From Auanema rhodensis (Eukaryota; Animalia; Nematoda), in the NCBI GenBank assembly GCA_964057225.1, contig OZ059899.1:14818001-14882000 (forward strand): DNA of 64,000 nucleotides, in the 5' to 3' direction. The notes under the pieces were generated by a model, which saw only the letters and a program-made list of their open reading frames with translations, ran no database searches and had not been told where the DNA came from. Every line of letters begins with the position of its first letter. The first letter of the stretch is position 1. This document shows, piece after piece, positions 1 to 36,229 of this stretch. The position numbers and the translations under genes are program-made.

Positions 1-1616
1 CCGATGACGTGAGTACTACATCTTATCCCCTTCATTATTCTAATATCATAGATACAGTTGGATGATGTAGATGGCGATAAAGGCGATGATTCAGCAGCTG
101 CTAAACGACGTGGCCCTAGAACGACAATCAAAGCTAAACAGGCAAGTTTGTTAATTCACGCGTTTTTGTTGCTACTACTGCTGTTGCCATTGCATCCATG
201 TCCCAAGTTTCTCAATTTTCGATCCTCGATCGGCATCGGCTTTTTCATAGTTTTTCCTTCATGTTGTTCTATTATTTGTTCTTTTGAAATGCTGTTGAAA
301 CAGCTTTGGAACTGCTGAACCATCTTGTTGTTTCTGGTTGCAAATTGGAAATGATTGATTCAGCCGAAAACGGATGTACAGCCCTGAAGGAAAAAAAGTT
401 TGAGATGAGAAACAGCCGAGAAGGTCGTTGATGGTGAATGAGGACACACAGCCGCTCATAATCCTGTATCAAACGGGAAAAAAAAGCCAAAAATTGTAGT
501 TTTTGCCATTTTCGTCTCATTTTCCTTGCGACAATGACGTCGCAACATAAATTGTTTTTTGAATGATTTGAGACCGTTTTTCTGATTTATTTTTTCAGTT
601 AGAAACGCTGAAGAACGCATTTGCTACTACACCCAAGCCTACTAGACATATTCGAGAACAATTAGCTGTGGAAACAGGATTAAATATGCGAGTAATACAA
701 GTACGTTCATAACTGATTTTTCAAAGCAAAATAGCTTTTGACTATACTTCGTTCTGCTGTCTAGACACCCAGATGGCTGGCTAATATCTGCTGATATCAA
801 GCTGCCTTCACTGGGGTTGACGCAGATATCTGAAGTTGAAAGACTTCGTGTTGGAGATTCTTATTACTTTTCATCGAAAATACAATAATGTCATCCGGGT
901 TTTCGATTTTCAAGAATGATATGCAGGAATTAGCTTGTTACTATATCTGATCGAAGTGATGTGAGTGATGTGTGTTAACACGATATTCTATGCCATGCGC
1001 TAGTGATGATGAAATTTTAAAACACCGTGAATCTACAACGAGAGTGTAAGGCAGGGGACAAAGAGAATGAGATAGAGAGAAAAGAGGGAGCTAGAAAGAG
1101 AGAGAGAGAAAGGAGAGAGAGAGGAGAAAGAGAGAGAGATGAGAAAGAAAAAAGACCATAGACAGAAAGAGAAACCAAAGATAGTTGTGTGAAGCGAGTT
1201 GAACCGGATGATTACATTCAGTCTCTCTTCTCTGTATCTCTTCGAAACACATAATGCTCCATTCTCATTTCCCTCGGTCCTTTAATTCACCTACATCTCT
1301 CTGGGGACCAACGGCAATTCAATTACCGTATGCTGGCTGACTGAAGCCTCATGGACCTACGGGCACACTGTCCTTGCCATACAGCATTCTGATGCCTCTA
1401 GCCATATGGCTCTTTCTTTTTGCACACTCTCTTCACTTCTATTTATTCCCCTTTATTCGTCTATCTCGTTTTCTCTCTATGTTGAACTAGCTCTTTCTCT
1501 GTGTGTCTGACTTTTCAGCCTGTTTATGTGAAAAAAAAGGTTCAAAGAAGAAAGATATGAAAACAGGAAGATGAGTCTCAGGCACACATATACGTCTATA
1601 TACATATAGACATATG

Positions 1617-1664
<48 letters not shown>

Positions 1665-2837
1665 GTGACATTACTCTTTCATTTTGAAAGAAGAAGAAGC
1701 AAGAAGCACAAATGTTGTGTTATCTGGCTGCTTTTCTGATCTTCGTTTCGTTGATTTTTGCGATTTTTCTTGGCTCCTTATCAGCAGAACAACATCTGTG
1801 CTCTTGCCGATGATGCGTCTTGCTCACCGTGCATTAGGATGTAGAAATCATGGAACATCTGACGGATCTTTAAAATGGAAAACGGGAGTAAGTGAGGAAG
1901 AAGGTTGAAGATAAAGTGGACGATAAGAGGCTTCAATGTTGAAGGCTGGTGACGATGTCGGGTTTCCTTGAGAGACAAATCTTCAGAGCTCTTATTGAGA
2001 AAATTGATTATGGGTTAGTCAGGTTCAAAGCAATATGGAAACAAGCAAGATGAAAGAAATAAAGGAGAATGATAGTAAATGAGATAAGAATTAAGAGAAA
2101 GAAAGAGGAAATCAAGCTTGAAGAGATAGAGAGCAGTAGAAACGAGGAAGCTGGTATAGAGGCTGAGAGAAAAAGTATGTGTGGGGGGGGGGTATTCCTG
2201 TTAAAGATTGCATTTATGTATAAGAAAAAGAATAAATTATAAGATATTAGGGTTTGAAACAAGTATTAATTGCTTTAAGTATCAGAATATCATATATAGT
2301 TAGATAGATAGTTAGATATAACTTATTTTAAAAAGTAAATTAAATTATATGAATGAATAACATTCAGAAAGTTTCGTGAATGAATAGATTTGTAGAAGAC
2401 ATTCATTACATGCTTATCCTATTTAGCTTTTCTCTCTTTCTTTCTCTCTCTCATTTTCTTCTTCTAATTATGGCATCTATCTTATAAACTTTACCCTTCG
2501 AACCGACTGATCTAATTGACCTGATCGTCATTGTTATTTTGTCCTCTTGACTCACAAAATTATGATGAAAGTTCTGAAACAGCCAATTTCTGTTTGGGAA
2601 CCAAAAAAAGAATTTTTTTTCTTCCTTTTCTACTCATCTGTTTATTTCATTTCGTTTCATCGTATTCAGTTTGTGTTTTCAGGTCTGGTTCCAGAATCGA
2701 CGTAGCAAGGAGAGGCGTATGAAACAGCTGAGATACGGTGGTTACAGACCAACACGACGAAATCGTGGAGGACGAGACGATATTTGTCAGGAAATGTTCA
2801 CACCAGGTAAAGCTTCGTACATTCAAAACTATCTGTA

Positions 2838-2893
<56 letters not shown>

Positions 2894-3254
2894 TGTGTTC
2901 AACTTCTGAAGCTGTTTGTCATAGAAATCGATATGATATACATGAAATGACCTTATTGCCAAACATGCCTCTTCTTCATTTTGGAGAAAAAAAAGTTGCA
3001 AATTTGGTTTTTGAGTCATGAGAAAAGTCTTATAAATAAGAGTAGTAGTGAGAATGAGAGTAGAAGAGAAAAAGAGAAAAGAGGTAAAGCATGGAATTAG
3101 AGATAATTCATGTTTTTCTTGTTGATTCTTTTCATTTTGCTCGCTAAGGCTACATTAGAAGCTGGAAAACATTGTCAAGGCGAGTGTATGGATGAGAGCA
3201 TGTTGAAGAGAAAGAGGACGAGCAGAAAAAGAGCAAGACACAGAGATGGAGAGC

Positions 3255-3316
<62 letters not shown>

Positions 3317-4638
3317 AGGGAGAGAGAGAGAGAGAGATTGAGAGAGAGAGAGAGAGAGAGGGGGGGAGGGAGAGAGAGAGAGAGAGATTGAGAGCTGAAA
3401 GTCGTCTTCAGCTACCGTAATCCCGATCTATGTCGATGTGGGTATGGTTTATGGTTGAAATGTTGCGAGGGAATGCATGAAAGCAAGCTCACTGGTCTCT
3501 TCTACGAAAAGAGTTAAAGAAGAGGAACTAAAACTTTATGTTCTAAACATAGTTGAAGCATATGAACATGTATTGAAATCAGTGCAAATGACTTTTATCA
3601 ACAAAGTTTTTAAAATGTTTTTCAAGTTTATTACCTATATGCTATATATTTAACTATATAATTTCACTAATTTTCATAGAAATATTGAAAATTTCAAGAA
3701 AAATGTTTGATAGCTTTAAGATATTAAAGACATTTTTTCTTCTACTTTGTGCTCTATCAGTAAAACATGGCTTCTCATCTAACACTAGCTAGAAGTTTCT
3801 ATCTTGAAAACTAAAATCTTCTCACTTCTTCTACTTTCTCGATTGATTTGACTTTGGATGTCATTGACATCAGTCTGTTTTGCTTATTTTCAATCACGGT
3901 TCCAGCTCAAGAGTCAGTCTGCACTCTAAAGAACTGTGATGATGTAAGGTCATCCGGTTAATCCGGCTGGTATTTTAGCAGATTGCGCAATAATGATTTT
4001 GGGATTTTTGATGAGCAGGTGTGATCCGTAGGTTGTTGATGATCCATAAAACCATAATTGCTCTTAGATACGTTTTAAAGGCTCTATCTTATAATAGTAA
4101 ATATGTTTAAATCACCAATTGAGCTCATCCATATTATAATCTATTAATCTGCTCAAAAGCCAAAATATGTTTGACCTAACTAGACAGAGAAAGAGGGGAA
4201 CTGAAGAAAGGGGAAGATCAACAGAAAAGATATTCTGATAAATTTAAGAAGAAAACGTGCACAAATCAAAATAATACATGAGCTACTTCAGTGTCAGAAG
4301 GACCGCCACCACCATTTTTCGGTCAACCTCCACCTCCAATGGGATTCTTCTGTGATCCGTACAGCGTACAACCCGAACGATCTCAACTACCATCATTCGG
4401 TACAGAATCCGCACATGCAATGGTTCATCGTGAGTTATTTCTGTTTCCGGACAAGCATATATCTTATCATATTATAGCATCAGAAGCCACCTTTTCCAAC
4501 GAAAGGACGTCACCATTGAATGGCGGATTACCTAACGCCATCATGCCGGAATTCGACCAAGAAATGCCTCCCCCTGTTTTCCATCCTTTGCCTTCTGTAT
4601 ATCCGACGACAGAACTGAAGCCGATGGCAGGATGGTAG
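1..4638 (+). CDS. lin-11: LIM-homeodomain transcription factor, Lhx1/5 class (lin-11 ortholog); 3' part only, LIM domains lie upstream of the window
   Basis: Spliced model: <1-8, 52(or 58)-141, 599-700, 2683-2806, 4292-4429, 4478-4638 (TAG); splice phases are all compatible. It translates to [13 protein letters not shown]|[34 protein letters not shown]|[20 protein letters not shown], the LIN-11/Lhx1 homeodomain, followed by a Pro-rich tail. Confidence 0.95.
2842..2892. repeat. (TG)n microsatellite, ~25 units, in a lin-11 intron
   Basis: Uninterrupted TG run read directly from the sequence. Confidence 0.95.
3247..3394. repeat. (GA)n microsatellite with an internal ~50-bp duplication
   Basis: GA run in which GGGGGGAGGG(AG)nATTGAGAG occurs twice (~3311 and ~3361). 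Confidence 0.9.
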
Positions 4639-5084
4639 TAGTATGAGAGCAACCATCATCAGCCTTCCGTACAGCACAACACATTCCATAGCTTCGAGCA
4701 AAAACATCATTATTCATTCCAAAGTTCTCTAACTATGTGTGCATGATTCTTCAGTTTCGAATCATTTATAGTTTATTATAACATATAGTTTATACAATTA
4801 TAATTATTTTCCCATCAAAAAGTCTTTTCTTCTGCCATTTATCCGCACACAATCAGCCATAATTCAGCGCCGAAGTCATTATGTTTTCACGTCAGCCTAT
4901 ATAGAAGTCACAACTACTTATCTCATTGTGGCTTCTCCTAATAATTTCTTTTTTCCTTTAACTATAAAAGGAATATTTCATACTTTTCTCTTGCCTTATT
5001 GATCATTATTGATTCTTCTAATTATTTTCGATGTTATATCTTCATCATCATACATCTCCATTTCTCTCATCCCCTCTCTTTCTT

Positions 5085-5131
<47 letters not shown>

Positions 5132-5954
5132 ATTTTCTAAAACTCTGAATTCAGCATGAAGTACATAGCCAACCAATTACGATGATGATGATGATTAAAT
5201 ATCACAAAATAAGTTTGTATCACTTCACTCATATTAGGAAATTAATTTGATGCGTGTGTCTGTATACTAAGTGTCGCATAATGTTTTTTTTTGTATTTTT
5301 TATTGTGTATGTTTCTCTTGTAAACTCTATTTACTATATTCTGATGATATATACGACGAGGATCGACGGTTGACAGTTCTAGCTCGGTCGTCGTCGACAG
5401 CGATGTCGACAGCCGTTGGCTACTAGACACGAACGCATAGATATGGCATTGACACAAGTCATGTACGTCTTCTGAATATATGCTGTCAGTCTATGCTTGC
5501 CGTCATCTGAATCATCGTTGTGTTTGTGTGAAAAATATTATTTTAAGCTCAGTCATTCATGTTCATAGTCATCTGACGTTCATCAGACATCTGATTCTGT
5601 ATTCTTTTTCTGGAAAAAATTATTGTTTATAGCTAATAATATATTTATTTTTCAATAATTATACAACAAACACATGTACATAAGCAGTTTTCTAACAAAT
5701 TTTTTCAATACAGTTCCACGTTAATCTTCTAGATAATGCTCAGGGAATGAGGCTGATACGAAAGTTGCAATAGGTTGCATAGATGTGATTCAACACTTAA
5801 GGCTGTAGGTTGAAGCCAGGATCTGCGAATACGAGATTTCTCAGGACGTTTCAATTGTTGGCAAGAGTATTGTGAAATCTCTTATAATAAGCTGAACGTC
5901 TTTGTCAGTTTTTTTCTTGAAAAGGCTGACTGTAAACGATGGAATTCTAAATTT

Positions 5955-5985
<31 letters not shown>

Positions 5986-7875
5986 TTATCTTTATCTTTA
6001 TATTGAAGTCGCGAGTGAAGCTGTCACATTGTGTCGCAGACAGGGAAAACGATGTGAGGGAGGAAGAAAGGATACACAATGTGTGACTAGCAGGTGTTAT
6101 CGTAAGCTTGAAGCAACAGAATGAGATACACGTCTGCTTGGTATGCTTCTTGTACATGTATGAATGAGCATTGACGGCCGGATGATTGTCGTCTGTCGTC
6201 TTGGTGAGGTTAAACAACACACATCAGAAATAGGAGGAGACAGAGATGATAGAAGAAGATGGTGTAGACAGGACATATAGATACAGCTCATCAACTGACT
6301 GAATCTGCTCATTTCCATATAAGAGGCTCTTTTTTGAGGTTTCAACACAACTAACTGGATAATTGATGGCATTTTGATGACAACTCGATCGGCAGCCGTC
6401 TCGTCTCGAGGGAGAACGATAAACGAAGGAAACGACATCTTTTCATAAAAATACATTGAGAGATGAAGAAAAGCACATATATGAGGTCATGATGTTGATA
6501 AGCTGCTGTCAAATATGTACATAAGTTCATTCAATAATGAGTATATTCTTATAAACCTTTATAAGAATATAGAGGGAATATCTTCGACTTCAAAATGCTG
6601 CTGAGAGCAGAAGCATGCAACTCAACTTGAATCACCGTTTTGGGATTAAAACTTGAAAACTGGGAAGAATGAGAAAGCCTTTGCCTCAAGATCAGTTTTC
6701 AATATATGTATTTCATAAGAAGATCATTCAATAGTCAGAACAGTTTCTTTTGCTCTCATGGAGTCGAAAAATTCAGAAACTTGCTAAAGTCGAGATAAAA
6801 CATCAATACGTCTGATGTGCATGATAGGTAAGTAGAGTTTACCGACGCTACATCTATGAAGTCAAGATGACGGAGAGAGCCAGATGCTCTACGGCCATTA
6901 ACTACTACTTCTTAACGTGATTAGCTGACGATATGACTCGTCTAATCCTCTTTCATTTATGATCATTAGATTGTATAATCGACGTAATGTATGATTGCCT
7001 CCAGAAGGCTTACGTTCTAACAGAATACGCATTTTCTTTCTCATCTCTCTCAATCTCTCTCTCTCTCAATCTCCCTCTCTATTTCTTTCTCTCTCTCTCT
7101 ACACATACGTAAACCTCCTACGTTCCATTTTCCTTTCTCTCTTTATACTTCAAGTCATCCTCCTCTTCCTCCTACTCATCATCATCATCATCTTATGATT
7201 CGGTGCCATATGTTTTATTTGGTTGCGGTAAATGGCCTGATGAGCATGAAACATTGGAGCACGTGGAGGTGTGACCTCATACCGTATACAGCCTGATGTT
7301 GTGTCTAATCTATTTCTCTAATTCTCTTCAATTTTACTTATCTCTAAAAAAGAATTCAATATGTCACATTGTTCTAACTGCTCTTCCTTTAATTTTGCCT
7401 TTTTTGTTGTTTTTGATGGTGATAGGCAAGCAGAAGGTCAGGCAGAATGTTAACTTTTCATTTACAATACAAGGAAATGACACAAATATCTAATGTAATA
7501 AGGATATATCTTTCTATTATCTTAGAAAGAGAGAACAGTCTAATTACAAAGTTGAATAAAGACAGATGTCTGTCCTTCTATAGCATTGTTACAGATGATC
7601 ACGTCATATACATCATTATGCTTTTAAGCATAGTATGCATGTATCTCTTTTTCATCTAAAAATAGTTTTAAGGGAGGAAATATTTTGAAAAATCTTTGAT
7701 ATATTTGCTCAAAATATGTTCCAAATTCTTCATCTCCTCTATTTTCTTGATCATAAAGAATTCTGGTGCTTCATCCTTCACATCCTATTCTTTTGAATTA
7801 TTTGATCAACATATATTTTAATGAAGTAATATAACTTATTATATAAAGAATTAGCATATATTTTTGAATAATTAA

Positions 7876-9539
7876 CACCTGAATCATTTGACGTGAATCA
7901 TTTCACGTGAACCATTTCACGTGAATCATTTGATGTGAACCATTTGACGTGAATCATTTGACGTGAATCATTTCACGTGAACCATTTCACGTGAATCATT
8001 TGATGTGAACCATTTGACGTGAATCATTTGACGTGAATCATTTGACGTGAACCATTTCACGTGAACCATTTCACGTGAATCATTTGATGTGAACCATTTC
8101 ACGTGAATCATTTGATGTGAACCATTTCACGTGAATCATTTGACGTGAACCATTTCACGTGAATCATTTGACGTGAACCATTTGACGTGAATCATTTGAC
8201 GTGAATCATTTGATGTGAACCATTTCACGTGAATCATTTGACGTGAACCATTTGACGTGAATCATTTGACGTGAATCATTTGATGTGAACCATTTCACGT
8301 GAACCATTTCACGTGAATCATTTCACGTGAATCATTTCACGTGAATCATTTGATGTGAACCATTTCACGTGAACCATTTCACGTGAATCATTTGATGTGA
8401 ACCATTTCACGTGAACCATTTCACGTGAATCATTTGATGTGAACCATTTCACGTGAACCATTTCACGTGAACCATTTCACGTGAATCATTTGATGTGAAC
8501 CATTTCACGTGAATCATTTGATGTGAACCATTTCACGTGAATCATTTGATGTGAACCATTTCACGTGAACCACGTGAACCATTTCACGTGAATCATTTGA
8601 CGTGAACCATTTCACGTGAATCATTTGACGTGAACCATTTCACGTGAATCATTTGACGTGAACCATTTCACGTGAATCATTTGACGTGAACCATTTGACG
8701 TGAACCATTTCACGTGAATCATTTGACGTGAACCATTTGACGTGAATCATTTCACGTGAATCATTTGACGTGAACCATTTCACGTGAATCATTTGACGTG
8801 AACCATTTCACGTGAACCACGTGAACCATTTCACGTGAATCATTTGACGTGAACCATTTCACGTGAATCATTTGACGTGAACCATTTCACGTGAATCATT
8901 TGACGTGAACCATTTCACGTGAATCATTTGACGTGAACCATTTGACGTGAACCATTTCACGTGAATCATTTGACGTGAACCATTTGACGTGAATCATTTC
9001 ACGTGAATCATTTGACGTGAACCATTTCACGTGAATCATTTGACGTGAACCATTTCACGTGAATCATTTGACGTGAACCATTTCACGTGAATCATTTGAC
9101 GTGAACCATTTCACGTGAATCATTTGACGTGAACCATTTCACGTGAATCATTTGACGTGAATCATTTGACGTGAACCATTTGACGTGAATCATTTGACGT
9201 GAACCATTTCACGTGAATCATTTGACGTGAATCATTTGACGTGAATCATTTCACGTGAACCATTTCACGTGAACCATTTGACGTGAACCATTTGACGTGA
9301 ATCATTTGACGTGAATCATTTGACGTGAATCATTTGACGTGAACCATTTGACGTGAACCATTTCATGTGAATCATTTGACGTCAACCATTTCATGTGAAT
9401 CATTTGACGTCAACCATTTCACGTGAATCATTTGATGTGAACCATTTCACGTGAACCATTTGACGTGAACCATTTCACGTGAATCATTTGACGTCAACCA
9501 TTTCATGTGAATCATTTGACGTCAACCATTTCACGTGAA
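7876..9539. repeat. 14-bp minisatellite GTGAAYCATTTSAY, about 119 units, with variant repeats
   Basis: Tandem GTGAATCATTTGAC / GTGAACCATTTCAC / GTGAATCATTTGAT and related variants. Unit junctions form CACGTG, GACGTG or GATGTG. Two 9-bp deletion units sit at 8565 and 8812. Confidence 0.98.
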
Positions 9540-9668
9540 ACAGTATTATTTCGTTTACATGTAAGAAACAATGGAACGGTTGTTCATCATTGACTTTCAC
9601 TTATTTCATTTGGTTTTCAGTCTAACGACGTAAATAGAACATTAAGAGAGCATGTTCAAGCTATGCCG

Positions 9669-9908
9669 CTAGTAAAATGATTAAAAACTTTATTTGAACA
9701 TCTATGAACATTCCGATTACGTCATAATTACGTCATACGAAAGAAATTGATAATAACATCGAAGTGAGGTCTCGTAAGTACAACGTGGCGCTTGTTCTGT
9801 TATTATCGTGTGAACTTTCTTAACTTTCAATTTCTTTCGTATGACGTAAACATGACGTAATCGGAATGTTCATAGATGTTCAAATAAAGTTTTTAATCAT
9901 TTTACTAG
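9669..9908. repeat. Long inverted repeat / hairpin (82-bp arms, 76-bp loop), possibly MITE-like
   Basis: 9669-9750 is the reverse complement of 9827-9908 with 2 mismatches. Both ends are CTAG and each arm has two TTACGTCA motifs. Confidence 0.93.
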
Positions 9909-9992
9909 AAAAAGCAGTAATTTACAATATTTTATTAATTAATATAACAATGATATTACAATATAATTAACAGAGACATATGACAAGTTATG

Positions 9993-10067
9993 AAATAAGT
10001 AAAAGACCCTTGGACAAGCGAATCCGTTGTTCAAGCTAAATGAGTTCCTTATTTATAGATTGATGCA
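9993..10067 (-). repeat. Outer inverted repeat, left copy (3' flank of ORF A)
   Basis: About 80% identical by eye to the reverse complement of 12561-12639; the innermost 25 nt match 24/25. Confidence 0.85.
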
Positions 10068-10083
10068 GTTGATATTTTGATTA

Positions 10084-10710
10084 TCATTGTATTTTATTAG
10101 CTGTCAAAATGCTCACAAAATGCTTGGCTTTCTCAAGAAATTCCGTCAGATGTGTTAGATCTTTTCTACAACTTAGGTACGGATTTCTGAGATTGTAGTA
10201 CTTTTCTACAAAGTTAATGATATTATTTATTAATAAAATAGAAGTATTAATTATATGCTCAGTGTTATTAATTATATGACATCGATTCATAGATAATAGC
10301 TTATTAAATACTAGATTACTGAAAACGCAAAACATTTGGGAAACATTGACGATTTCCGTTGCCAAATGAATCTGGTTGATAAATTTATCCCGAATTTCAT
10401 TTTGAAATCTGTCATCAAATTTAATACTGCCGACAGACTCTTTAAGTTTTAGGATGATATCAGTTAACCTAGCGCCTTCTGAGATATAGTAAGCGTGATC
10501 CTTATTTGGATTACACATCATACTAAACTTCAGCAAATGTTCTTGTACGTTCCTACGGAATGTGACAACATATCTAACATGTTTAGTTAATGCTTCAACA
10601 AGTTTCACTATATCATCTGGAGAAACGTCAGGATAATGGGATTTTTGAAACTTCTGTAGTTGAAATAAAGCGTTGCCTATAGAGATGAGAATAGTTTCGT
10701 GATGAGTCAT
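10084..10710 (-). CDS. Orphan ORF A, 208 aa, intronless, looks helical, function unknown
   Basis: Long non-repetitive ORF with protein-like composition in very AT-rich DNA. It ends in tandem stops TGA TAA, with AATAAA on the minus strand near 9931-9936. No recognisable domain. Confidence 0.6.
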   Translation of the reverse strand: MTHHETILISIGNALFQLQKFQKSHYPDVSPDDIVKLVEALTKHVRYVVTFRRNVQEHLLKFSMMCNPNKDHAYYISEGARLTDIILKLKESVGSIKFDDRFQNEIRDKFINQIHLATEIVNVSQMFCVFSNLVFNKLLSMNRCHIINNTEHIINTSILLINNIINFVEKYYNLRNPYLSCRKDLTHLTEFLEKAKHFVSILTANKIQ

Positions 10711-11053
10711 GGATATCTGTCATATAGTAAGCGTATTGAACTTTTGTCAACATTCTATGTTACGTAGAATCTGAAATAAATTTGTTGAATAAATTGAATA
10801 ACCAATTGGAATTAACAAGAAAAACATACGGATGCTCATGAACACCGCGATTAATTGATAACTTTAAATTTAAAAATTTATAGAAATCTTTATTGACTTT
10901 ACTACAGTTTATACCACGCCCCCAAGGAATTAAGCAAGAAGAAGCCAAAGGTCAATGAAGAAAATGTTTTTCTTACTATGTCAAATTTCATTTTCTGTTG
11001 ATACAAAGATAAAAAAGTTCCAAGTTTTCAGAATCCAATCTCTAATCAGATAG
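10710..11053 (-). repeat. 344-bp inverted repeat, left arm
   Basis: Reverse complement of 11388-11731 (coordinate sum 22441), with only 2 mismatches seen, both near the outer end. Degenerate similarity extends to ~11091/11354. Confidence 0.97.
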
Positions 11054-11087
11054 AACCTTGTTAAATGATGACAAATAGATATTGTCA

Positions 11088-11151
11088 TCGTTGAGCATCG
11101 GATTTTATCTATAACGCAGATTCTGATTTCGACCGTATCATAAATAGTGCA
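11088..11151 (+). repeat. 64-bp direct repeat, copy 1
   Basis: TCGTTGAGCATCGGATT...CATAAATAGTGCA, 62/64 identical to 12501-12564. Confidence 0.95.
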
Positions 11152-11453
11152 AAAGAAGACTCAAACGAATATGAAATCTATGTAAAGTTCGTGACAATAA
11201 CGGAATATGCATGCACATCAGCATCACAGTCAATTTTAAAACTCAATCAAGTGTTCGCAGTCAATGATATTTCTGAAAAGCAGTGTCTGTATAATGACTC
11301 AGCTATATTATGGATAAATCAACACAATCTTTTACATTTTGTTTTGATGAACGTACGATATCAATATCTATTTTGTTTGATAAGGTCCTATCTGATTAGA
11401 GATTGGATTCTGAAAACTTGGAACTTTTTTATCTTTGTATCAACAGAAAATGA
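11096..11453 (+). pseudogene. Orphan gene C, 3' fragment (exon ~11096/11120-11352, intron 11353-11399, exon 11400-11453) lacking its 5' exon at this position
   Basis: Open frame SDFIYNADSDFDRIINSAKEDSNEYEIYVKF...HFVLMN, then a 47-nt GT..AG intron, then RLDSENLELFYLCINRK*. No start codon upstream of the fragment. Confidence 0.4.
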
Positions 11454-11731
11454 AATTTGACATAGTAAGAAAAACATTTTCTTCATTGACCTTTGGCTTC
11501 TTCTTGCTTAATTCCTTGGGGGCGTGGTATAAACTGTAGTAAAGTCAATAAAGATTTCTATAAATTTTTAAATTTAAAGTTATCAATTAATCGCGGTGTT
11601 CATGAGCATCCGTATGTTTTTCTTGTTAATTCCAATTGGTTATTCAATTTATTCAACAAATTTATTTCAGATTCTACGTAACATAGAATGTTGACAAAAG
11701 TTCAATACGCTTACTATGTGACAGATGTCCA
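11388..11731 (+). repeat. 344-bp inverted repeat, right arm
   Basis: Reverse complement of 10710-11053. Confidence 0.97.
11518..11533 (+). promoter_or_regulatory. Candidate GC box + TATA inside the inverted-repeat arm (mirror copy at 10908-10923, minus strand)
   Basis: GGGGGCGTGG immediately followed by TATAAA, about 135 bp upstream of a TTTCAG acceptor (11665-11670) and the ATG at 11688. Confidence 0.35.
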
Positions 11732-12507
11732 GGCTGATGTTGAGGTAAATACATGTTGTTATGTTATATATATATATGATATAGTTAATAATTTAGCCGA
11801 TACCCTCAATTAAACAATTGGAATGCCAATCGGATTATTCGAGTAAAAATGAAGTATTGCAAGGTTTTCCATATATCAGCTTGATAACAAGCTCCAATAA
11901 CGGAATATTGCCGAATAGCCCTATATTTCCTACACTGGTCCCTGACTGTGCATATCATCGTACTTTAATTCCATTGGATTATTTTGAGGATTACGATTTT
12001 TGGATGATCAACAATGAGAAGGGACAAGTAACTATTCTTTTGACCAACGGAGACTCCGAACGTAAATTTGCTCTATATCTGGAACTCACAAAGCTCAATA
12101 AGGAAGATAATGAATTTATCTGCTTTACAGATGGAATATGGCGTTCTACTGATACATCAAACAATCAACCAACTGTTAATATCATACTTATTCATGATAT
12201 TGAACTGAATGATGATTGTCAATGGGACAAGGTGGTGAAACGTTCTAACGTTATTTCTTCCTTTTCTGGATGTACTCCAAACAAACTTGAAGCGATTCCT
12301 GAGATACACCACTTATCGGAAACAGAGGTTGGTCTTACGAACGATCCAAATTCGACTGAAATGGATCAGCGGCTAAGCAAAGCTAGCAAGATCATGGAAA
12401 CATGTACACAATTAATGGATCCTAATCATGACAACGACGACGTCATTGCCTTCTTTGACGACCAGTATGTGCTTCCATTTCAAAACGTTCTAAAACTTAT
12501 TCGTTGA
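11688..12507 (+). CDS. Orphan gene B, about 255 aa, acidic, function unknown
   Basis: TTTCAG possible trans-splice site at 11670. Exon 11688-11744 (MLTKVQYAYYVTDVQADVE), 52-nt GTAAAT..TTTAG intron, then exon 11797-12507 in frame with the 229-aa ORF. AATAAA at ~12654. Confidence 0.7.
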
Positions 12508-12564
12508 GCATCGGATTCTATCTATAACGTAGATTCTGATTTCGACCGTATCATAAATAGTGCA
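12501..12564 (+). repeat. 64-bp direct repeat, copy 2
   Basis: 62/64 identical to 11088-11151; spans the stop codon of gene B. Confidence 0.95.
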
Positions 12565-12639
12565 TCATTCTATAAATAAGGAACTTCTTCATCAGCTTGA
12601 ACCACATATTGACTTGTTCAAGGGTTCTTTTATTCATTT
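12561..12639 (+). repeat. Outer inverted repeat, right copy (3' flank of gene B)
   Basis: Reverse-complement homology to 9993-10067. Confidence 0.85.
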
Positions 12640-13534
12640 TTTAAATTTTTTTAAATAAAAAAAATTTTAAATTCAAAATATTATATATATATGTATATAA
12701 TTAATTATATAAATTAATGAAGCTATTAGTGAAGATTGAATTATTATTAATTTACAATCAAGATATGTTTTATGTGTAATCAATATATTATCTTTCACCT
12801 GAGTTTCATACATGACACAACTATATGTTCACACTTCTGCAGCTTTTTGATAATTTTTAAAATTATTAAATTAAAACAAAAATGTTTTATTATTTATATA
12901 AAAACAAGTTAAAAGAATAAATTATATAATTTATATACAACATCTTATTCATATATTTTTAATTTTGCGATTTTAATGTTTTTCATACCTACTACACATT
13001 TTGACATATTCCTCGTGGAGTCATTGACAACCAAATCAGGTGGGAATATGCTTTTCAAAAACTTATTTTTTCCAAAAAAAAAAACCTTTTGCCTTTCTCT
13101 CATTCATTAACAATTCTTCACATTCTCTTTCTCCTCCCATATACATGTTTCAAAGTTTTTCCATTAGCAACACCACACCACATCGGGCTTTGTACTACGA
13201 AGATATCCATCCTGGCATCGGCCGGCACAGAGCCCTCTCAATGCTTCGCGTTTCCTGTCAGGAGCACACCGGCTGCAAGCTGCTGGTTTGTGCTCTTATG
13301 GCCTCGTCTATTCATCTTATCCGCTGCATACCTCTTGGCTTCATCAGCACTTCTCTGTCTCTAACTGACTTACTCTCTTCATTCATTCTTTCACTGCTCC
13401 GCCCAAGCGCTGGCTACATTCACAGACCACATACGTAGCTATTGCCATCCTCAGCTGGATAAGCAATGATAAGATGTTGGAATGTAGAAGAAGTGAAATG
13501 GGTGAGCTTTGGAGAGCTTCCGAGAGAGAAAGAG

Positions 13535-13584
<50 letters not shown>

Positions 13585-13791
13585 CGAGGGAAGGGGGAGA
13601 GAAACAGAGAAAACTTTTCAAATGCTAATGATGAAAAGCTCATAAACTATTCGTCAGAGAATACCAAAGTAAGTTGAGAATAAAAGCAAGAAATCAAGCA
13701 GAAAATGGAAAAAAGCGAAATGAGAAGATTTGAAACGCTGAACTTTGGCCAAATTCTCTCAAACTCTTTCTCTTCCTCTATTTTTTATTTT

Positions 13792-13845
<54 letters not shown>

Positions 13846-15780
13846 GTTGATCCATTTTCTCCATATCTTACCACCCAAGATTAAAACTATTTCCCTCCGT
13901 ATGATTATTATGTGCCAGAGTGATATTCCTTTGGTAGTAATAGCTTTTGAGAAAGTATGCCATGCGAAGCTCTCGTATCTTCTTCTCCTGATTCCCAAAA
14001 AGATTTATTTAGTTTAACTATATCATATATATCGCATATATTCATATATAATAATTATATTTATCAATAAAAAAAATGTTTAATTATACGAATAAATTGC
14101 TTAATATACTAAACTAAAATAATTTAATTTAATTGTAAAATATATTTTATTTATTTCTAAATCTTTTTTTTTGTTCATTAAATATTCGAAATATATGCAT
14201 TTTCTCATGTTTTATGCTATAAAAATAAAATAAAATAAATTAAAAATAAGCAAAGAATAGCCCAAAGATGTATGCAGGATCGTTTTTCTATTGCCGCTTG
14301 TTTTTCCAGTAGCTCCTCCTACTCCAGTTTGATGATCAGAAGAAGAGGAAAAGCAATGTCCTTTGGTTGATGAAAAAGATTTGGAAGGAAAGAAACATAA
14401 ACAGGCTAAAGCATATAGAGATGAATTCAACATAGAATCAGACGACGATACGTCGTCGTTTCTCAAACTACGTAAAACACGCAGTTTATAACTTTTTCTT
14501 CAAATTTCTCTTTCTCTCTCTTTCTCTCTCTCGTTTTCTTTTTCCCTCTTTATCTCTCTCTCTTACCTTCCGGATCGCCTTTTTGCCGTTTTTGGTTTTG
14601 TTTCCTAGCCTTCAAGCCTTACTATTTGCAATCTTATTTAACTATTCAATTTCGAAATATTTAGAATTTATTTTTTCTACTCTTTCCCTCCCTCGCTCCC
14701 TCCCTCCCTCCCTCGCTCCCTCCCTCCCTCCCTCGCTCCTTCCCTTCCTCCCTCATTCAACTTTTTATTCCCTTTTTCTCTCCTGCTGCAAACACACTCT
14801 TCTTACTATCTTTTCTCTTTCGTTGACAGATTTGCAGGACAGCAAAGATCCAATCCTAGCTTTCAAATAAAAAATATGTTTATATTACAGAAAGCTTACT
14901 TCATGATCATATTCGGCAGGCTTTTCATTCATTCTTCATCTTTCAACCTCTCTTTTCCTCTTTCACTCTCATTTCTTCTTACCCCTTTTCATTCTTTGCC
15001 GTTCGTTCCTCTTCCTTCCTCTGTCTGCCGCCCCGTTCTCTTCATCTCTCTTTCATTGCCTGTTGTCCTCTCTCATGTTTCTCACGATGTCCTACTGATA
15101 TTCAGCTGAATTAAGCTCCGCCTTCATGGATACGAACGAACAAATCTAACGACAACAATCTGAGGAATGTCTGTTTCTTTATCTGCTCAGTGTTTTCTAA
15201 ATCTTCATAGTTTCCCATATTTTTTATCATTAAGCTTATCGCTTAGAGACATTTATAACAAATTGCCTTCCGGCTTTTTTTCTTTATCTGACCTTAATTT
15301 GGCAAAAAACACCTCGTATTCCCTGCTTTCATGGCGCTTAATTCTCCAACTGATCAGTGTGAAAAGCTGCAGTTCGTCGAAGCACCAGCAGCTATTTACA
15401 TTTGAAGCTTATCCTGATTATCACTTCACTAAATCATATCATTCAAATAGAAATATAGAAATAGATATTTTCAAATAACTATATGTATAGATATGTGTAT
15501 ATCTATTGAAACGTCAGTCCTTTTTTGAAATATTTATTCGTATAAGTATCTGATTTTCAGCAGACCGCCCCTCCCTTCCTACTTACCAATCCACTGATCC
15601 TCAAAATATTCTCTTTTTCTTCCAAATATATAATCATTTCATCTTCGATTCAACATTTTTATTATAATCTTTCAGTCATTTTCCTTTTCTTTTTTTTTTT
15701 AAGAAAAATAAAATAAAAGAATAATTGGTTTTGAAGCATTACTGCTCAGCTTTAATATACATACTATGTATGTATACATG

Positions 15781-15886
15781 TTTGCCCATATATACATATA
15801 CTACAATTCATTTCACGTCAAATTCACGTGCGACGTGACATGCTAATGACACCATTTTCAGTATCTCAGACACATATAACGGTTTC
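15781..15886 (+). promoter_or_regulatory. Dispersed E-box/CGGTT composite element, copy E2
   Basis: TTTGC at 15781, CACGTC 15814, CACGTG 15825, GACGTG 15832, AACGGTTT with C at 15880, in an AT-rich patch. Confidence 0.45.
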
Positions 15887-16692
15887 TTTTACTTTATTTA
15901 GAAATAAAACATTTCTAAATATTTGTTTTAAAATATAAAATTCAACAACTATATATAACTATATGTATAGATAACTATATATAGATAGATAGATAGATAG
16001 ATAGGTATACTGTAAATATATATTTATACATATATGTATCTACATGTATGTATAGAGATAGATTGTGATTTCATATTTGTATTATTAATGAGTTATTTCT
16101 TTTTTTTTCTCCTTCTATATGATCTTTGATACATCTCTTACATTTCTATCGTGTTCATGGCGCATACTCGCTCCTTAGACCACCCTGAGGGCTAAGTAAA
16201 AGGAGAATTTGGAAAAGAGATAGAACATAAAGTAGATGAAGTAGATATTAGGAATTAGAGGGAAACAACGTTTAAAAAACAGAACTTTAAAAAGATTGAG
16301 AGAGAGAGAGAGACATAGAGAGAGAGAAATTGAATTTCAAATCCCCCAAATATTTTTAATTATAAATATTTAAAAATACTTTTTATAAAGAAATAAATAT
16401 ATTATTTATACAAAATAATATAATTTGATAAATAAATTTAAACTATACATATAGTATAAGAGTAGTTCATTTACATTTCATATAAGGATCTTTGATATAT
16501 ACATGAATTCAAATATATTTCATAATAACATGAAAATATCTGAATGGAAAGTTTATTTATAATTATAATATTCATATCATACTATTCTTTCAATTATGAA
16601 AGTTCGTTTTCTCTCTGGAACATCTAATTCTCTTTTCATTTCATTCCCAGAATACTTCCTTCATTCTCACCCTCTCTCTCTCTCTTTCTCTT

Positions 16693-16751
<59 letters not shown>

Positions 16752-17177
16752 TTCTCTCTCTTTCTTCTTCTTCCTTCCTGTTATACAAAAATTTCTATTT
16801 ATTATTTATTTAATAAATTTCATAATCATAACCCAAATCTTATTTTTCTTTCTGTTATCCTAAGTTTTTTAATTTTTTTTTATTTTCATCTTCTTCCTTT
16901 TCTCTTTTTCGTTATGACGTAGTTGTGAGTTAGATGTATGTATGTACATGCATGTTATGCTCCAGACGCAAGACCACCAATGTCGACGAGTTTATGTCTC
17001 TCGTCTTCTTCTTTTTCTTCTTTTTAACCAATTTTGTAGATAATGTCTCCCGAAAAAAATCGAAGAAGATGTCTTTAGATGAACATGCTGCTTATCATAT
17101 CCAGTTAGATTCACAATCTTGAATCTCCTAAGTTATTCTGAATGAATTCCCTTCTCTGCCCTCCCTCGCCCTCTTTC

Positions 17178-17184
17178 CTCTCTT

Positions 17185-17272
<88 letters not shown>
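17178..17272. repeat. (CT)n microsatellite, representative of dozens in the window
   Basis: About 95-bp CT run read directly. Confidence 0.9.
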
Positions 17273-17275
<3 letters not shown>

Positions 17276-17915
17276 CGTTATCCTATTTCAAACAAAAAAA
17301 TATTTCATTTCTTTATTGCTAATATCATATTAGTCTATTACACATTCGTCTTATTTAGCTAATTAAGCTAGTATAGAAGATATAACTGAATAAGCTGGCC
17401 ATCTCTGTTTCTCTTCGTCTCCAAAATTTTCTTTTCTTTGCCATCTTTCTTGGACTTGATGTGCTTGGCTATCTGAAAAATCTGCAAGAAATATGAAGAA
17501 AGTGAGATGAGAATGAGGTGGAAAATGAGCAGAATTGCCTAAAATTGCAGATGCACACACACAGAGACATGTATGTATGTATGGATGTCTGAAGATAATT
17601 TTTGATTTTTCTTATTACCTTTATTAAAATAATTTATAATATATAGATTACTAGCATGTATGTATAACTTATGTAACTTATAAATATATAAAACAACTAC
17701 TTTTCTAATGATTTTCGACTTTTTCCTTTAGATATTGGAAGCATGGATGGCGACATGCGCCTTACCAAAAGCTGCTCCTTGGTCTTTTTCCTCATCTCAT
17801 CTGCATGACAACGGTTTGGAAATGGAAACTCAGACGAGATAGAGAGTGAGAGATATGAGTAGATGAAACATGAGAGAGACATCACAGGAAAGACATGATG
17901 ATAGAAGTAAGACGA

Positions 17916-17953
<38 letters not shown>

Positions 17954-18359
17954 CGAGACGGGGCGCACGGAACCAGCTTACTGCTCAAATTCAGCTCCAA
18001 GTAAGACCCAATGAGTGACAGAGCAAAGTCTGAGGAGAATAGGGCGTCGTCAGTTCGTTTATGCCTATCTCTCTTCTTCCAATCGCAGATTCGTTCGCGT
18101 TCTCGCTGTCTCTTCTCCTCCCGTTTGTCTGTAATATAAGTTGAAAAGGGCAAAGTTCTTAGTTATGTGAATGATGTACTAAACGGAAGCACAAATTCAT
18201 TTTTCCATTTGAGGAAGAACATAACAGAAGGAGAGACTGTTCTCATTACCTCCTCCATAGTTTAATGCTTTCATCATATAAATTCATGAAGAGACTGAAA
18301 GAAGAATCGGCCATGAGTCAGTCCTTTTTACTCCCTCTCTCTTTTTCTTGTAGGTATAT

Positions 18360-18410
<51 letters not shown>

Positions 18411-19301
18411 CAATATGCTCTTTCTCAGTAACATTATGCAAATGAATTCAAACTTATCTAAAGACATAATATCTTCATACATATATGCTTCTTAGTCATT
18501 TTCTTCTCTATTTAATTTTCAATCATCTCCATCACTTTTCAAATCTTTTGAACTATTTTTAAAAGAAAAAAGAAATATGAAAGCTTGAAAAGCTTCAAGG
18601 TTTATCACTTGTCAAAGTACAGAACGTTGTGAATGTTTAGTGAAAAGATGAATGAGTTAATAGATTCTTTTGACTTCTATCGACTTCACATTCAACAATA
18701 GCTATTTGAAGGTTTTTGTGAAAAAAATAGCAGAAAACGAGATATACATCTCCGTCGATCTCAGACATTTGCATTAAGTTTCTGTTAGATTTGGTATGAG
18801 CAAGCAGCAAATGAGCAAATGAAAGCAATAGCTTCTCATGTTATTGGTTTTTGAAATGAATCACATATAGTTATGTATAGTTAACAAACTGGATACAAGT
18901 ATATAGTTAAGATTACCATTTCCGGAACCTAAGTTCTGAAATGAAAGAAGCTCCTTCTGGCCATGTTATGTATGTTTCTTACTCAATCTGTGCATATGCT
19001 TCTATACATATGTATATGTGACTATGATCTGTATGCAGTATGCTGTATGCTGTAAGCTGTATATGGGTTATGCCTCCTAATTTCCCCTGAGGCATTTCGT
19101 TTTGTCATGGAAACTGAGCATCCTCACTCATATTGACAATGGACAGCAGTCATTAGATGATAAGAATAGATTTCGAAGGTTGTGTCTTCGTTCATTTAGA
19201 CGGGATTAGTATGGCACCACTGCGTTTCATTCAAAGATTTCATTGAACTGGTTGAGATTGGAGTAAAACCATTTTTACAAACTCTTCTACTATTTAGAAG
19301 T

Positions 19302-19393
<92 letters not shown>

Positions 19394-21205
19394 GATTCAG
19401 TTGGAAATGTAGTCATTGAGAGTTGACGATCGAACCACCGTATTACGCTTCATTTCGCAGCTTCCTCTACTGGAGAATCTCTTCGTTTCACTTTCTCTAT
19501 TTCTCTCTCAAATTCAACCTATCTATGAAACTCTCTCTACAACTTCGTCAGATTCTCCTTCTCTTATAAAATCGAAAAATTTCTTTTATGTATTCAAGAT
19601 TTCTTTTTCCCATTTTCTTCTGATTATACGCATACATACACACATACACCCTCCTTTTCTCGTCTGAAATCTCTTAGTGCAGGCTCTGCCGCTAGTTCTC
19701 AGCTCCATGGCTCAGGCTTCTAAACAACATTTCTTTCTATTGCTTCGTTCATTGCCTGAGGGGCGGCCAGCAGCCAATCCACTTCTCACTCAGTCTTTTT
19801 CCAACGTGTTCTCTGGTGCTCATTCCGGCTTTCTTTCACTCTCTCTTATTTCCTGCTTCTCTCACATCATCTCTCTCTACCTCTCACGCTCTCTTCGTCT
19901 CGTTCGTGCATTCTTTCGACCCTCTTTCCGTCTCGACTCATGGCTGTCTGCATGTGCCCTCAATGTCTTTCTCTTCCAGCTGAGAGAGTCAGATGGCTTT
20001 TCGCTATGTGGGCTCACAACCTCCATCTTCTGTCTCATACCATGCCGTTCTGCACAATCGTTTCTCATCCGTTTCAGCATTTTAGTTGTTTTTTCTCCCA
20101 TTTCTGTATGCAGGCCACCTTGCACCCTGCAAAGCATGACAAATGTTGTTTCGCCTCCGGCAATATCTTGACTCATCCTCAGTATTTTCCGTCTTTCCAT
20201 GTTCGTTAGATGCTTTCTATTCCTCTCACATACCAAAACTACATCACAAAAGCTTGTTGATCTATTGCTTTTGGGCATTATAATGAGTTCTTCTGGATGT
20301 TTTCACGTTCTCTCTCATATAGATTATTCTCTTTTCTTTAAAAGGAAGTTAAAACCTTTTATATGACTATATTCATTAAATCCAAGCAACTTAGATGCTC
20401 GTACCTCTCTTCAAGCTGACATCTATCTTTCCGTGTACATGACACGTTAATTGATCAACATACTTCCTAATGTTTCCGTGCACTTCGAACATTCTTCCAT
20501 ATTTTTCATTTTCTTCTTCCCCCTTGCCACCTTCCTTTTTCATTTTTCCAACATCCTCCCTCCCCTCCTCCCTCCTTCTCTCTCTGTCTGTCTCTTGTCT
20601 CCTATCCTCTTCTTTTTACTTATTTACATTCAATAGACTCAGTCTATTTCACAATCCATTTGAATGCCAAATATCTGCTGATGTCCAACGTAGCCTGTCT
20701 ATAGATGTCGATGTCTTTCCTCATCATTCCAACCATCTTTTTGGGGTTCGTTTGTCACTCAACCAACCAGTATAGCACATGATGATAAAGCATTTGAAAC
20801 AACTGTGAACAAATCACTTGCACTTCATGTAATCTCAGTACCAACTACAACTATTTCAAAAGAGTAAAATACTACTCTGAGATGGAGTGCACTTACCACA
20901 GCGTAGACAAGACAACGATAGGGCTGAGAAGAAGAGGATGAACCATTGTGTTGTACTTCAACCAGTAGCGTAGGCTTTATGATGTTAATAATGCTTATAA
21001 TGTTCCTATTTGATTTCAAGTTTATATTATTGTTTGTATTGTAACAGAATTGAAATTGAAATGGCCCTGAAGCAAATGATCTCTGTTATAACTACATTTC
21101 ACAACATATAAATAGCCTTATTTAGAAAAATTAAATATTCTACATGACTATTATTATAGTTAAGCTGAAACTTTATAAATAATTGTATTTCTTCAAATTT
21201 CATGT

Positions 21206-35853: not shown

Positions 35854-36229
35854 ATCTCTTTCTACCTCTCTCTGTTCAAAAACCATGAATGACCTTCGGC
35901 ATAGAACAATCATACTCAATAATTTTTAAAACTGGAGTAACACCTGCTCTGTGTGTTAGTAACTATTTCCCTTCTTTGCTCCTGTTTCGTTGATTTTCCA
36001 CAAAATTCAAATAAGAAAAGAAAGCAAGCCCTATATACATCAAATGATTTGTTTCAGGTCAATCGCTGGTTTGCTAATCGACGTCGAAAACAAACGAAAC
36101 GAACTAAAATCATGAATTCACCTGTGTGCGTCACTCCTGTGCCTCAGGCATCAATGCCTGATGACTGTATGCCGTCCGACAGCGGCTGTTCAACTGCTCC
36201 AGACGCCGTGAACTTCATCAATCCAGACG
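31419..36229 (+). CDS. Divergent TALE-class homeodomain protein (Mohawk/Iroquois-like), exons 1-4
   Basis: Exons 31419-31529, 31586-31744, 31791-31877, 36058-36229, with GT-AG introns in compatible phases. Homeodomain KARFRQLTTHLDR|WVNANGNNLYPTREEKEKLAEETTCSYIQ|VNRWFANRRRK has a TALE xYP loop and Ala50 (WFAN). TTTTAG acceptor at 31387 precedes the ATG. Confidence 0.88.

Follow-up and report, generated by a model that had tools for sequence, protein, structure and literature searches.

An apparent inverted copy of one gene's promoter and coding start before an unrelated long open reading frame in the nematode Auanema rhodensis

How can two coding regions that show no visible similarity come to lie between near-identical upstream sequences and similar downstream ones? 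This question is raised by a palindromic locus in a 64,000-nt stretch of the Auanema rhodensis genome (contig OZ059899.1, positions 14,818,001 to 14,882,000; this whole stretch is called the window, and the coordinates below count from its first base), in which open reading frame (ORF) A on the minus strand and gene B on the plus strand point away from each other out of a pair of inverted arms. A sequence-only reading of the locus had described A and B as orphans swapped into one expression chassis, and had suggested a two-component selfish element, an endogenised multipartite virus or a gene-capturing mobile element. The analysis reported here leads us to favour, with moderate confidence, a different explanation, in which a member of a fast-diverging gene family underwent a recent inverted duplication of chimeric or partial kind, or template-switch repair, or is subject to continuing gene conversion between the arms.

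A repeat search placed the inverted arms at 10710-11065 (arm A, minus strand) and 11376-11731 (arm B, plus strand), each 356 nt long and 99% complementary to the other, with 310 nt between them. The near-identity noted earlier, over 344 bp, therefore holds over a little more than that length. Only five mismatches separate the arms, every one of them no more than 12-14 nt from an arm end, and 330 nt are perfect; gapped blastn extends the homology inward to 11091 and 11355 (382 nt, 96%). The whole palindrome spans 1.02 kb, and ORF A and gene B, about 1 kb apart, face outward from it head to head. The outer, gene-side edge of the arms is abrupt and lies inside exon 1 of gene B, the next 30 and 60 nt scoring at or below the shuffle mean (z -0.7). 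At the inner edge there is a shoulder of ~40 nt with lower identity and a 5-nt indel (z 4.2, p 0.002), and the outermost ~25 nt at each end of the spacer (11066-11375) are accordingly diverged extensions of the arms. Copies of the arm, and of the two smaller repeated pieces described below as D2 and F, were counted within the 64-kb window; blastn found there no further copy of the arm and no further unit made of arm, ORF and F.

What the arms contain is the observation on which our explanation turns. As read from the sequence, arm B holds a GC box at 11518-11527, followed directly by TATAAA at 11528-11533 (mirrored in arm A at 10908-10913), and then a leader of ~125 nt with two upstream ATGs and an acceptor-like TTTCAG near 11670. 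The ATG of gene B at 11688 and the first 14 codons of the gene also fall inside the arm, which consequently encodes the conserved N-terminal motif of the protein family to which B belongs (see below). Since the arm carries the B start codon, these 14 codons and the family motif, we infer that it originated with B and that A's side received a copy. Arm B thus reads as B's own core promoter, leader and coding start rather than as a neutral chassis, and arm A as an inverted, near-perfect copy of the same 5' end, with its promoter, leader and 5' coding sequence. This does not agree with the earlier picture of a swappable, neutral expression chassis, in which B's conserved coding start would have no place and behind which A would not be expected to sit out of frame, as it does.

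On A's side the copied start opens a truncated frame (10631-10753, minus strand), which consists of the B start with its 14 codons and runs on to make 41 codons in all. This frame overlaps the start of ORF A and is not in the frame of A. When compared with the family profile it matched positions 21-47 with E 0.04; nearly all of this score comes from the part inside the arm, and for that reason we claim no homology beyond it. Identical promoters and leaders, together with a common piece of 3' untranslated region (UTR), make co-regulation of A and B a fair inference.

Gene B itself is best modelled with two exons. Exon 1 (11688-11744, plus strand) has 19 codons, carries the family's N-terminal motif and corresponds to profile positions 21-37; it is followed by a 52-nt GT..AG intron in phase 0 (11745-11796) and by exon 2 (11797-12507), whose 236 codons and stop contain the core domain of an uncharacterised animal family. 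The 255 amino acids first given for B consequently stand as a spliced two-exon product but not as a single reading frame. The splice model is supported by a gene of Mesorhabditis belari (contig L005) that has a phase-0 intron at B's profile position (37/40); other members of the family, L002 among them, do not have this intron. Furthermore, exon 1 aligns to the N-terminal motif at three invariant columns, and the N-terminal length of B equals that of the relatives P0001 and P0020. The predicted product is acidic, with a pI of 4.5.

The query in the full HMMER search was exon 2 of B. This search (phmmer, 1.84 billion representatives) gave 22 clusters at E<=1e-3, of which the best had E 5e-15 and 36% identity with the match covering residues ~19-150, and tblastn located 10 loci of the family at 1e-8 to 1e-19. 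The description of B as an orphan is contradicted by these relatives. Their sources were looked up for 19 of the 22 clusters: all the named ones are nematode proteins (Panagrolaimus superbus A0A914Y4S2, Panagrolaimus sp. ES5 A0AC34G005 and M. belari CAJ0916444.1), the others come from eukaryotic contigs in Logan, ENA and JGI, and no named Caenorhabditis protein is found among the 19. The family core comprises ~130-170 residues, and B has its conserved blocks as well as the invariant and near-invariant columns of the family alignment. On these comparisons gene B is a spliced, 255-codon member of an uncharacterised and fast-diverging animal gene family.

Other libraries added little to this picture. 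Exon 2 gave nothing meaningful in Pfam, PHROGs, NCBIfam or the PDB sequences, where all that was listed for it was one PDB chain at E 1 and, at E 0.008-0.12, three PHROG families whose function is not known, and a word-indexed search of 5.8 billion proteins with exon 2 and with the family alignment returned nothing new. When the 22 members were scanned with Pfam at E 10 there was no model common to them, and one of them showed a coiled-coil tail. A likeness of B to the PHYHIP C-terminal domain was considered and is ruled out at the Pfam level, where none of the 22 members matches at E 10. The family profile found no relative of solved structure in the PDB. The core is predicted to be beta-rich and to have no obvious catalytic residues; the single-sequence AlphaFold model of exon 2 is poor (pLDDT 39.5).

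Members of the family elsewhere showed no palindromes at their loci. On the M. belari contig L005 (CAUEEP010000118.1, 600-4650 and 12850-13790) at least three strongly diverged members stand in tandem in a stretch of 4 kb, the first exon of each being small and set apart, and a remnant of a mariner-type transposase lies 8 kb downstream. Contig L001 (ENA ERZ21781341 ctg64272l, 3400-20130) has two members ~9 kb apart with 50% amino-acid identity, dS 0.86 and dN/dS 0.49. Upstream of each of these two lies a stretch of ~5 kb that is 92-99% identical between them and ends 0.4-1.6 kb before the genes, and the contig also carries (AC)n runs and a weak CARD match. On contig L006 (ENA ERZ27254851 k141_685859, 1-13488) the family member is one of a dense set of genes, with 12 intron-less ORFs in 13.5 kb; most of these have no known identity, ankyrin, RRM and DUF6919 domains are present, and a 99-nt exact direct repeat stands at 11826/13390. 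This contig could be from a protist or a large DNA virus. Finally, among the relatives P0002-P0005 and P0009 there are some in which an insert rich in cysteine (4-6 Cys) immediately precedes the conserved C-x-W-D block, and in P0009 the complete family domain occurs twice in tandem.

Is ORF A, on the other side of the palindrome, a gene at all? It runs from 10084 to 10710 on the minus strand without an intron and has 208 codons and a stop, as first described. Its open frame is 211 codons long, for which the expectation by chance at the stop-codon frequency of the island is ~0.001 per window; in Markov simulations of the island (n=2000) the longest frame reached 195, and the length of ORF A was never attained. 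The codon-position composition resembles that of B, and B's codon usage is matched more closely in frame (-4.02 per codon) than when the sequence is read out of frame (-4.40). Together, these results suggest that ORF A looks like a genuine coding sequence. Its product would be basic, with a pI of 9.0, and without a membrane segment. It is predicted to be all-helical, with low confidence, by a single-sequence AlphaFold run that gave a poor model (pLDDT 46). The Foldseek comparison that had been suggested for A and B along with the sequence-only reading was made with such poor models, and against the PDB it returned only noise (best E 0.55 and 2.9).

ORF A is without relatives in Pfam, PHROGs, NCBIfam and the PDB sequences. 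No relative appeared in the word-indexed search of 5.8 billion proteins, the exhaustive HMMER search having been applied to B and not to A; an exact protein look-up showed A not to be on record, and viral, metagenome and prokaryote genome contigs gave no match. By tblastn, no A-like neighbour stands beside the members of the B family elsewhere. The orphan status first assigned to A is therefore upheld at the sensitivity of word-indexed and profile-library searches, not at that of exhaustive HMMER. We also considered that A might be a frameshifted or overprinted paralogue of B, and rejected this because none of the reading frames of the A region gives a signal of the family, even with stop codons translated as X. 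A stretch of 30 residues near the C-terminus of A that looks like the B family was not significant.

The two coding regions proved to be unrelated at every level at which they were compared. BLASTP of the two proteins gave E 60, Smith-Waterman alignment of the coding DNA scored 13 against a shuffle null of 13.6 +/- 1.8, and hhalign of A with the B family returned a probability of 0.3%. A remote paralogy of A and B, by which the locus would be an ordinary inverted gene duplication, thus finds no support in DNA, protein or profile, and the earlier observation that the coding regions lack similarity stands.

Downstream of the two genes the homology resumes. The piece F (12561-12647, plus strand), which lies in the 3' UTR of gene B, is shared with F' (9985-10067, minus strand) in the 3' flank of ORF A, with 78% identity over 87 nt (E 2e-12), close to the ~80% noted before. 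An AATAAA follows ~146 nt after the stop of B and ~150 nt after that of A. No sharp termini and no target-site duplication were seen at F' or F, where the homology fades gradually. A second duplicated piece, D2, comprises the last codons of B, its stop and the first 57 nt of its 3' UTR (12501-12564, plus strand). A 64-nt copy that is 97% identical to it lies in the spacer at 11088-11151, on the plus strand, and D2 is absent from the 3' end of A. The copy starts exactly where the homology of arm A ends; its first ~12 nt have a diverged mirror at 11340-11352. From this arrangement, the start of D2 looks like a three-way junction produced by template switching.

Could the palindrome simply have been made in the assembly, by a foldback or by a haplotype mis-join? 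Perfect inverted identity over 330 nt is the kind of structure that assemblers and chimeric reads can yield. We nevertheless regard an artefact as very unlikely, because each side runs into a different and coherent gene, true mismatches and the 5-nt indel are found at the arm ends, the spacer is unique and contains the independent 97% copy of D2, and 3' flanks that are 78% identical do not look allelic.

Identity at the locus thus has three levels, with the arms at 99-100%, D2 at 97% and F at 78%. These levels and the three-way junction at the start of D2 point to more than one event, or else to one complex event. In the history that we favour, a very recent small inverted duplication, template-switch repair or conversion from arm to arm would have placed the B promoter before A, or would keep it there. 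A could have been a divergent neighbour of B whose upstream region was overwritten by the inverted 5' end of B and the D2 piece, and would then be a chimeric gene of the kind described as partial duplication with recruitment, or as promoter capture. RNA polymerase II would transcribe both units divergently from identical TATA promoters, leading to their co-regulation. On A's side the copied B start would come first and out of frame, and A would be poorly translated unless its mRNA has another 5' end. What marks a partial or chimeric duplicate is indeed seen here: the tract of high identity ends inside a reading frame, and both copies continue into unique coding sequence. Such events are common among young duplicates of C. 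elegans, of which 116 of 290 were first classed as chimeric; in a re-examined subset, 43% were partial duplicates with recruitment (PMC3449122).

Three observations weigh against this history. A simple partial duplication of the 5' end leaves unexplained both the piece of 3' UTR shared between F and F' and the presence of homology at either border of the replaced segment. In addition, two upstream ATGs, both out of frame, precede the start of A, an unusual arrangement for a functional gene.

The locus may instead have begun as an old, full-length, head-to-head inverted pair of B paralogues, in which the 3' flanks drifted to 78%, the arms were homogenised by conversion within the palindrome, and the left copy subsequently lost its body to A. 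The 3' flanks would then be homologous yet old, as they are, and the inner shoulder of lower identity resembles the edge of a conversion tract. The B family, moreover, is typically found in local arrays of diverged paralogues, and the left frame beyond the arm is faintly family-like, at E 0.04. We still consider this origin unlikely. Apart from the N-terminal motif, the A region holds no family signal in any frame, even with stops read as X; the faint extension past the arm is worth only ~2 bits; the outer arm edge is abrupt and not graded; and a separate replacement event is still needed to bring in A.

That the non-homologous middle is flanked by homology on both sides is also what would be expected if the arm and F formed a reusable frame that exchanges unrelated ORFs, with A and B as a co-expressed, selfish module resembling a toxin and its antidote. 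A and B stand in tight linkage and diverge from identical promoters, their products are basic and acidic respectively, and the island in which they lie is compositionally distinct; nematode toxin-antidote pairs are linked and fast-evolving. We find this explanation improbable, however, because the supposed chassis includes B's conserved coding start and A sits out of frame behind a copied start codon. Furthermore, the B family spans several animal lineages rather than being restricted to the element of a single strain, the B relatives looked up (19 of 22) include no named Caenorhabditis protein, and the window contains no second unit.

A mobile or viral origin would make of F' and F the terminal inverted repeats of a 2.66-kb element with two genes, or of the arms the common region of an endogenised multipartite virus. 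F' and F are in fact inverted and terminal to the gene pair, the island is free of the CT/GA runs of the host, a MITE-like foldback adjoins, and one family member (on L006) resides on a gene-dense contig of mostly unknown ORFs. All the same, we judge such an origin highly improbable. Domain scans of A and B upheld the earlier remark that no transposase or Rep protein is visible, and they disclosed no capsid, Pfam or PHROG domain either. For a gene-capturing mobile element, sharp termini and a target-site duplication were likewise not seen, nor was any other copy in the 64 kb. For a multipartite virus, there is no stem-loop with a nonanucleotide: the nonanucleotide pattern occurs twice in the window, which is the chance level, and neither occurrence is in the island. 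The arm and D2 strings gave no match in viral or metagenome contigs. Finally, B has an intron of host type that it shares with a nematode gene.

The cassette lies in an island that differs from the rest of the window. In five consecutive 1-kb bins (8001-13000) there is no CT/GA run of at least 4 units, such runs making up 10-190 nt in most other bins, and the GC content is also lowest here (31% at 10-12 kb). The absence of (CT)n/(GA)n tracts reported from the first inspection is thereby borne out, and the hairpin and minisatellite said to adjoin are both present. Its DNA may be of more recent origin than that of the surrounding sequence; a search for terminal repeats flanking the island (7-13 kb) was negative. 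The minisatellite (7876-9539) consists of 28-nt units made of 14-nt sub-units, with ~60 copies and 92% matches. It lies 450 nt from the cassette, within the CT/GA-free island, and every sub-unit has a CACGTG or GACGTG core, which we take to be E-box or CRE-like. The hairpin is a 240-nt foldback (9669-9908) with 82-nt arms (98%) and TA beside both ends; as DNA it folds with -90.8 kcal/mol (z -20). Its arms have repeated TTACGTCAT-type cores that are reminiscent of the minisatellite. From its sequence the foldback resembles a MITE (miniature inverted-repeat transposable element) of Tc1/mariner derivation, and it is probably outside the cassette.

Further out, the window appears as a gene-poor region around developmental regulators. 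Homeobox helix-3 exons are found on the plus strand at 2683-2805 and 36058-36159, each preceded by TTTTCAG, the splice-acceptor consensus of nematodes; these acceptors, the intron position shared with M. belari and the nematode origin of the named B relatives all fit a nematode host. Their matches in the PDB are weak and do not reach significance (first exon, E 0.15-0.2; second exon, E 0.8-2), and the exons may be of LIM type and HNF1/HMBOX type. No Rfam family and no tRNA was found in the 64 kb.

If the history that we favour is right, the locus would provide a clean and dated snapshot of how an existing promoter can come to serve a new gene: the perfectly identical 330 nt would represent a very recent copy of a promoter and start before an unrelated long ORF, and the problem that such fusions have with upstream start codons would still be visible. 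Should A and B prove to be an exchangeable selfish pair, they would illustrate the arrangement by which pairs of this kind come to be co-expressed. In either case, the analysis brings out a protein family for which there is neither a Pfam model nor a solved structure, known from a few nematodes and other eukaryotic contigs, which forms local arrays and diverges fast.

Several known systems resemble this arrangement in part. In nanoviruses and begomoviruses, near-identical non-coding common regions stand before different ORFs, and in this multipartite ssDNA viruses are like the locus described here. They differ in that the present locus has no Rep and no origin stem-loop with a nonanucleotide, and that it comprises a spliced gene of host type in a linear chromosomal setting. 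Fungal mating-type idiomorphs are alternative alleles at one site, with unrelated sequence between homologous flanks. The same kind of flanking is seen here, but the two versions occur together in a single molecule, arranged as a palindrome, and in an animal host.

Among nematodes, the toxin-antidote elements (peel-1/zeel-1, sup-35/pha-1 and those of C. tropicalis; PMC10629817, doi 10.1101/2020.08.06.240564) also consist of two tightly linked genes, at least one of them without known relatives, in a compositionally distinct patch. No sequence link from our locus to known elements was found, A having no hits and the 19 B relatives looked up including no Caenorhabditis protein, although membership does not depend on homology; B differs from them in belonging to a family of several lineages; of the properties that define such elements, tight linkage is the one that sequence alone reveals here. 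The genes hsp-16.41 and hsp-16.2 of C. elegans form a divergent pair on a common promoter of 394 bp (PMC3587839). Like A and B they are head to head and a few hundred bases apart, with co-regulation expected; unlike A and B they are paralogues on one bidirectional region, the present locus having two copies of a unidirectional promoter and unrelated genes.

The remaining comparison is with the partial and chimeric duplicates of C. elegans (PMC3449122). Our locus departs from these in three ways: the start codon that was copied does not share the reading frame of the new ORF, there is a second and older block of homology at the 3' end, and the new ORF is long and already coding-like, not freshly recruited from non-coding DNA. 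With them it has in common a short tract of high identity over the promoter and 5' end of one gene, a break inside the reading frame with unique coding sequence on both sides, and copies that lie adjacent to each other.

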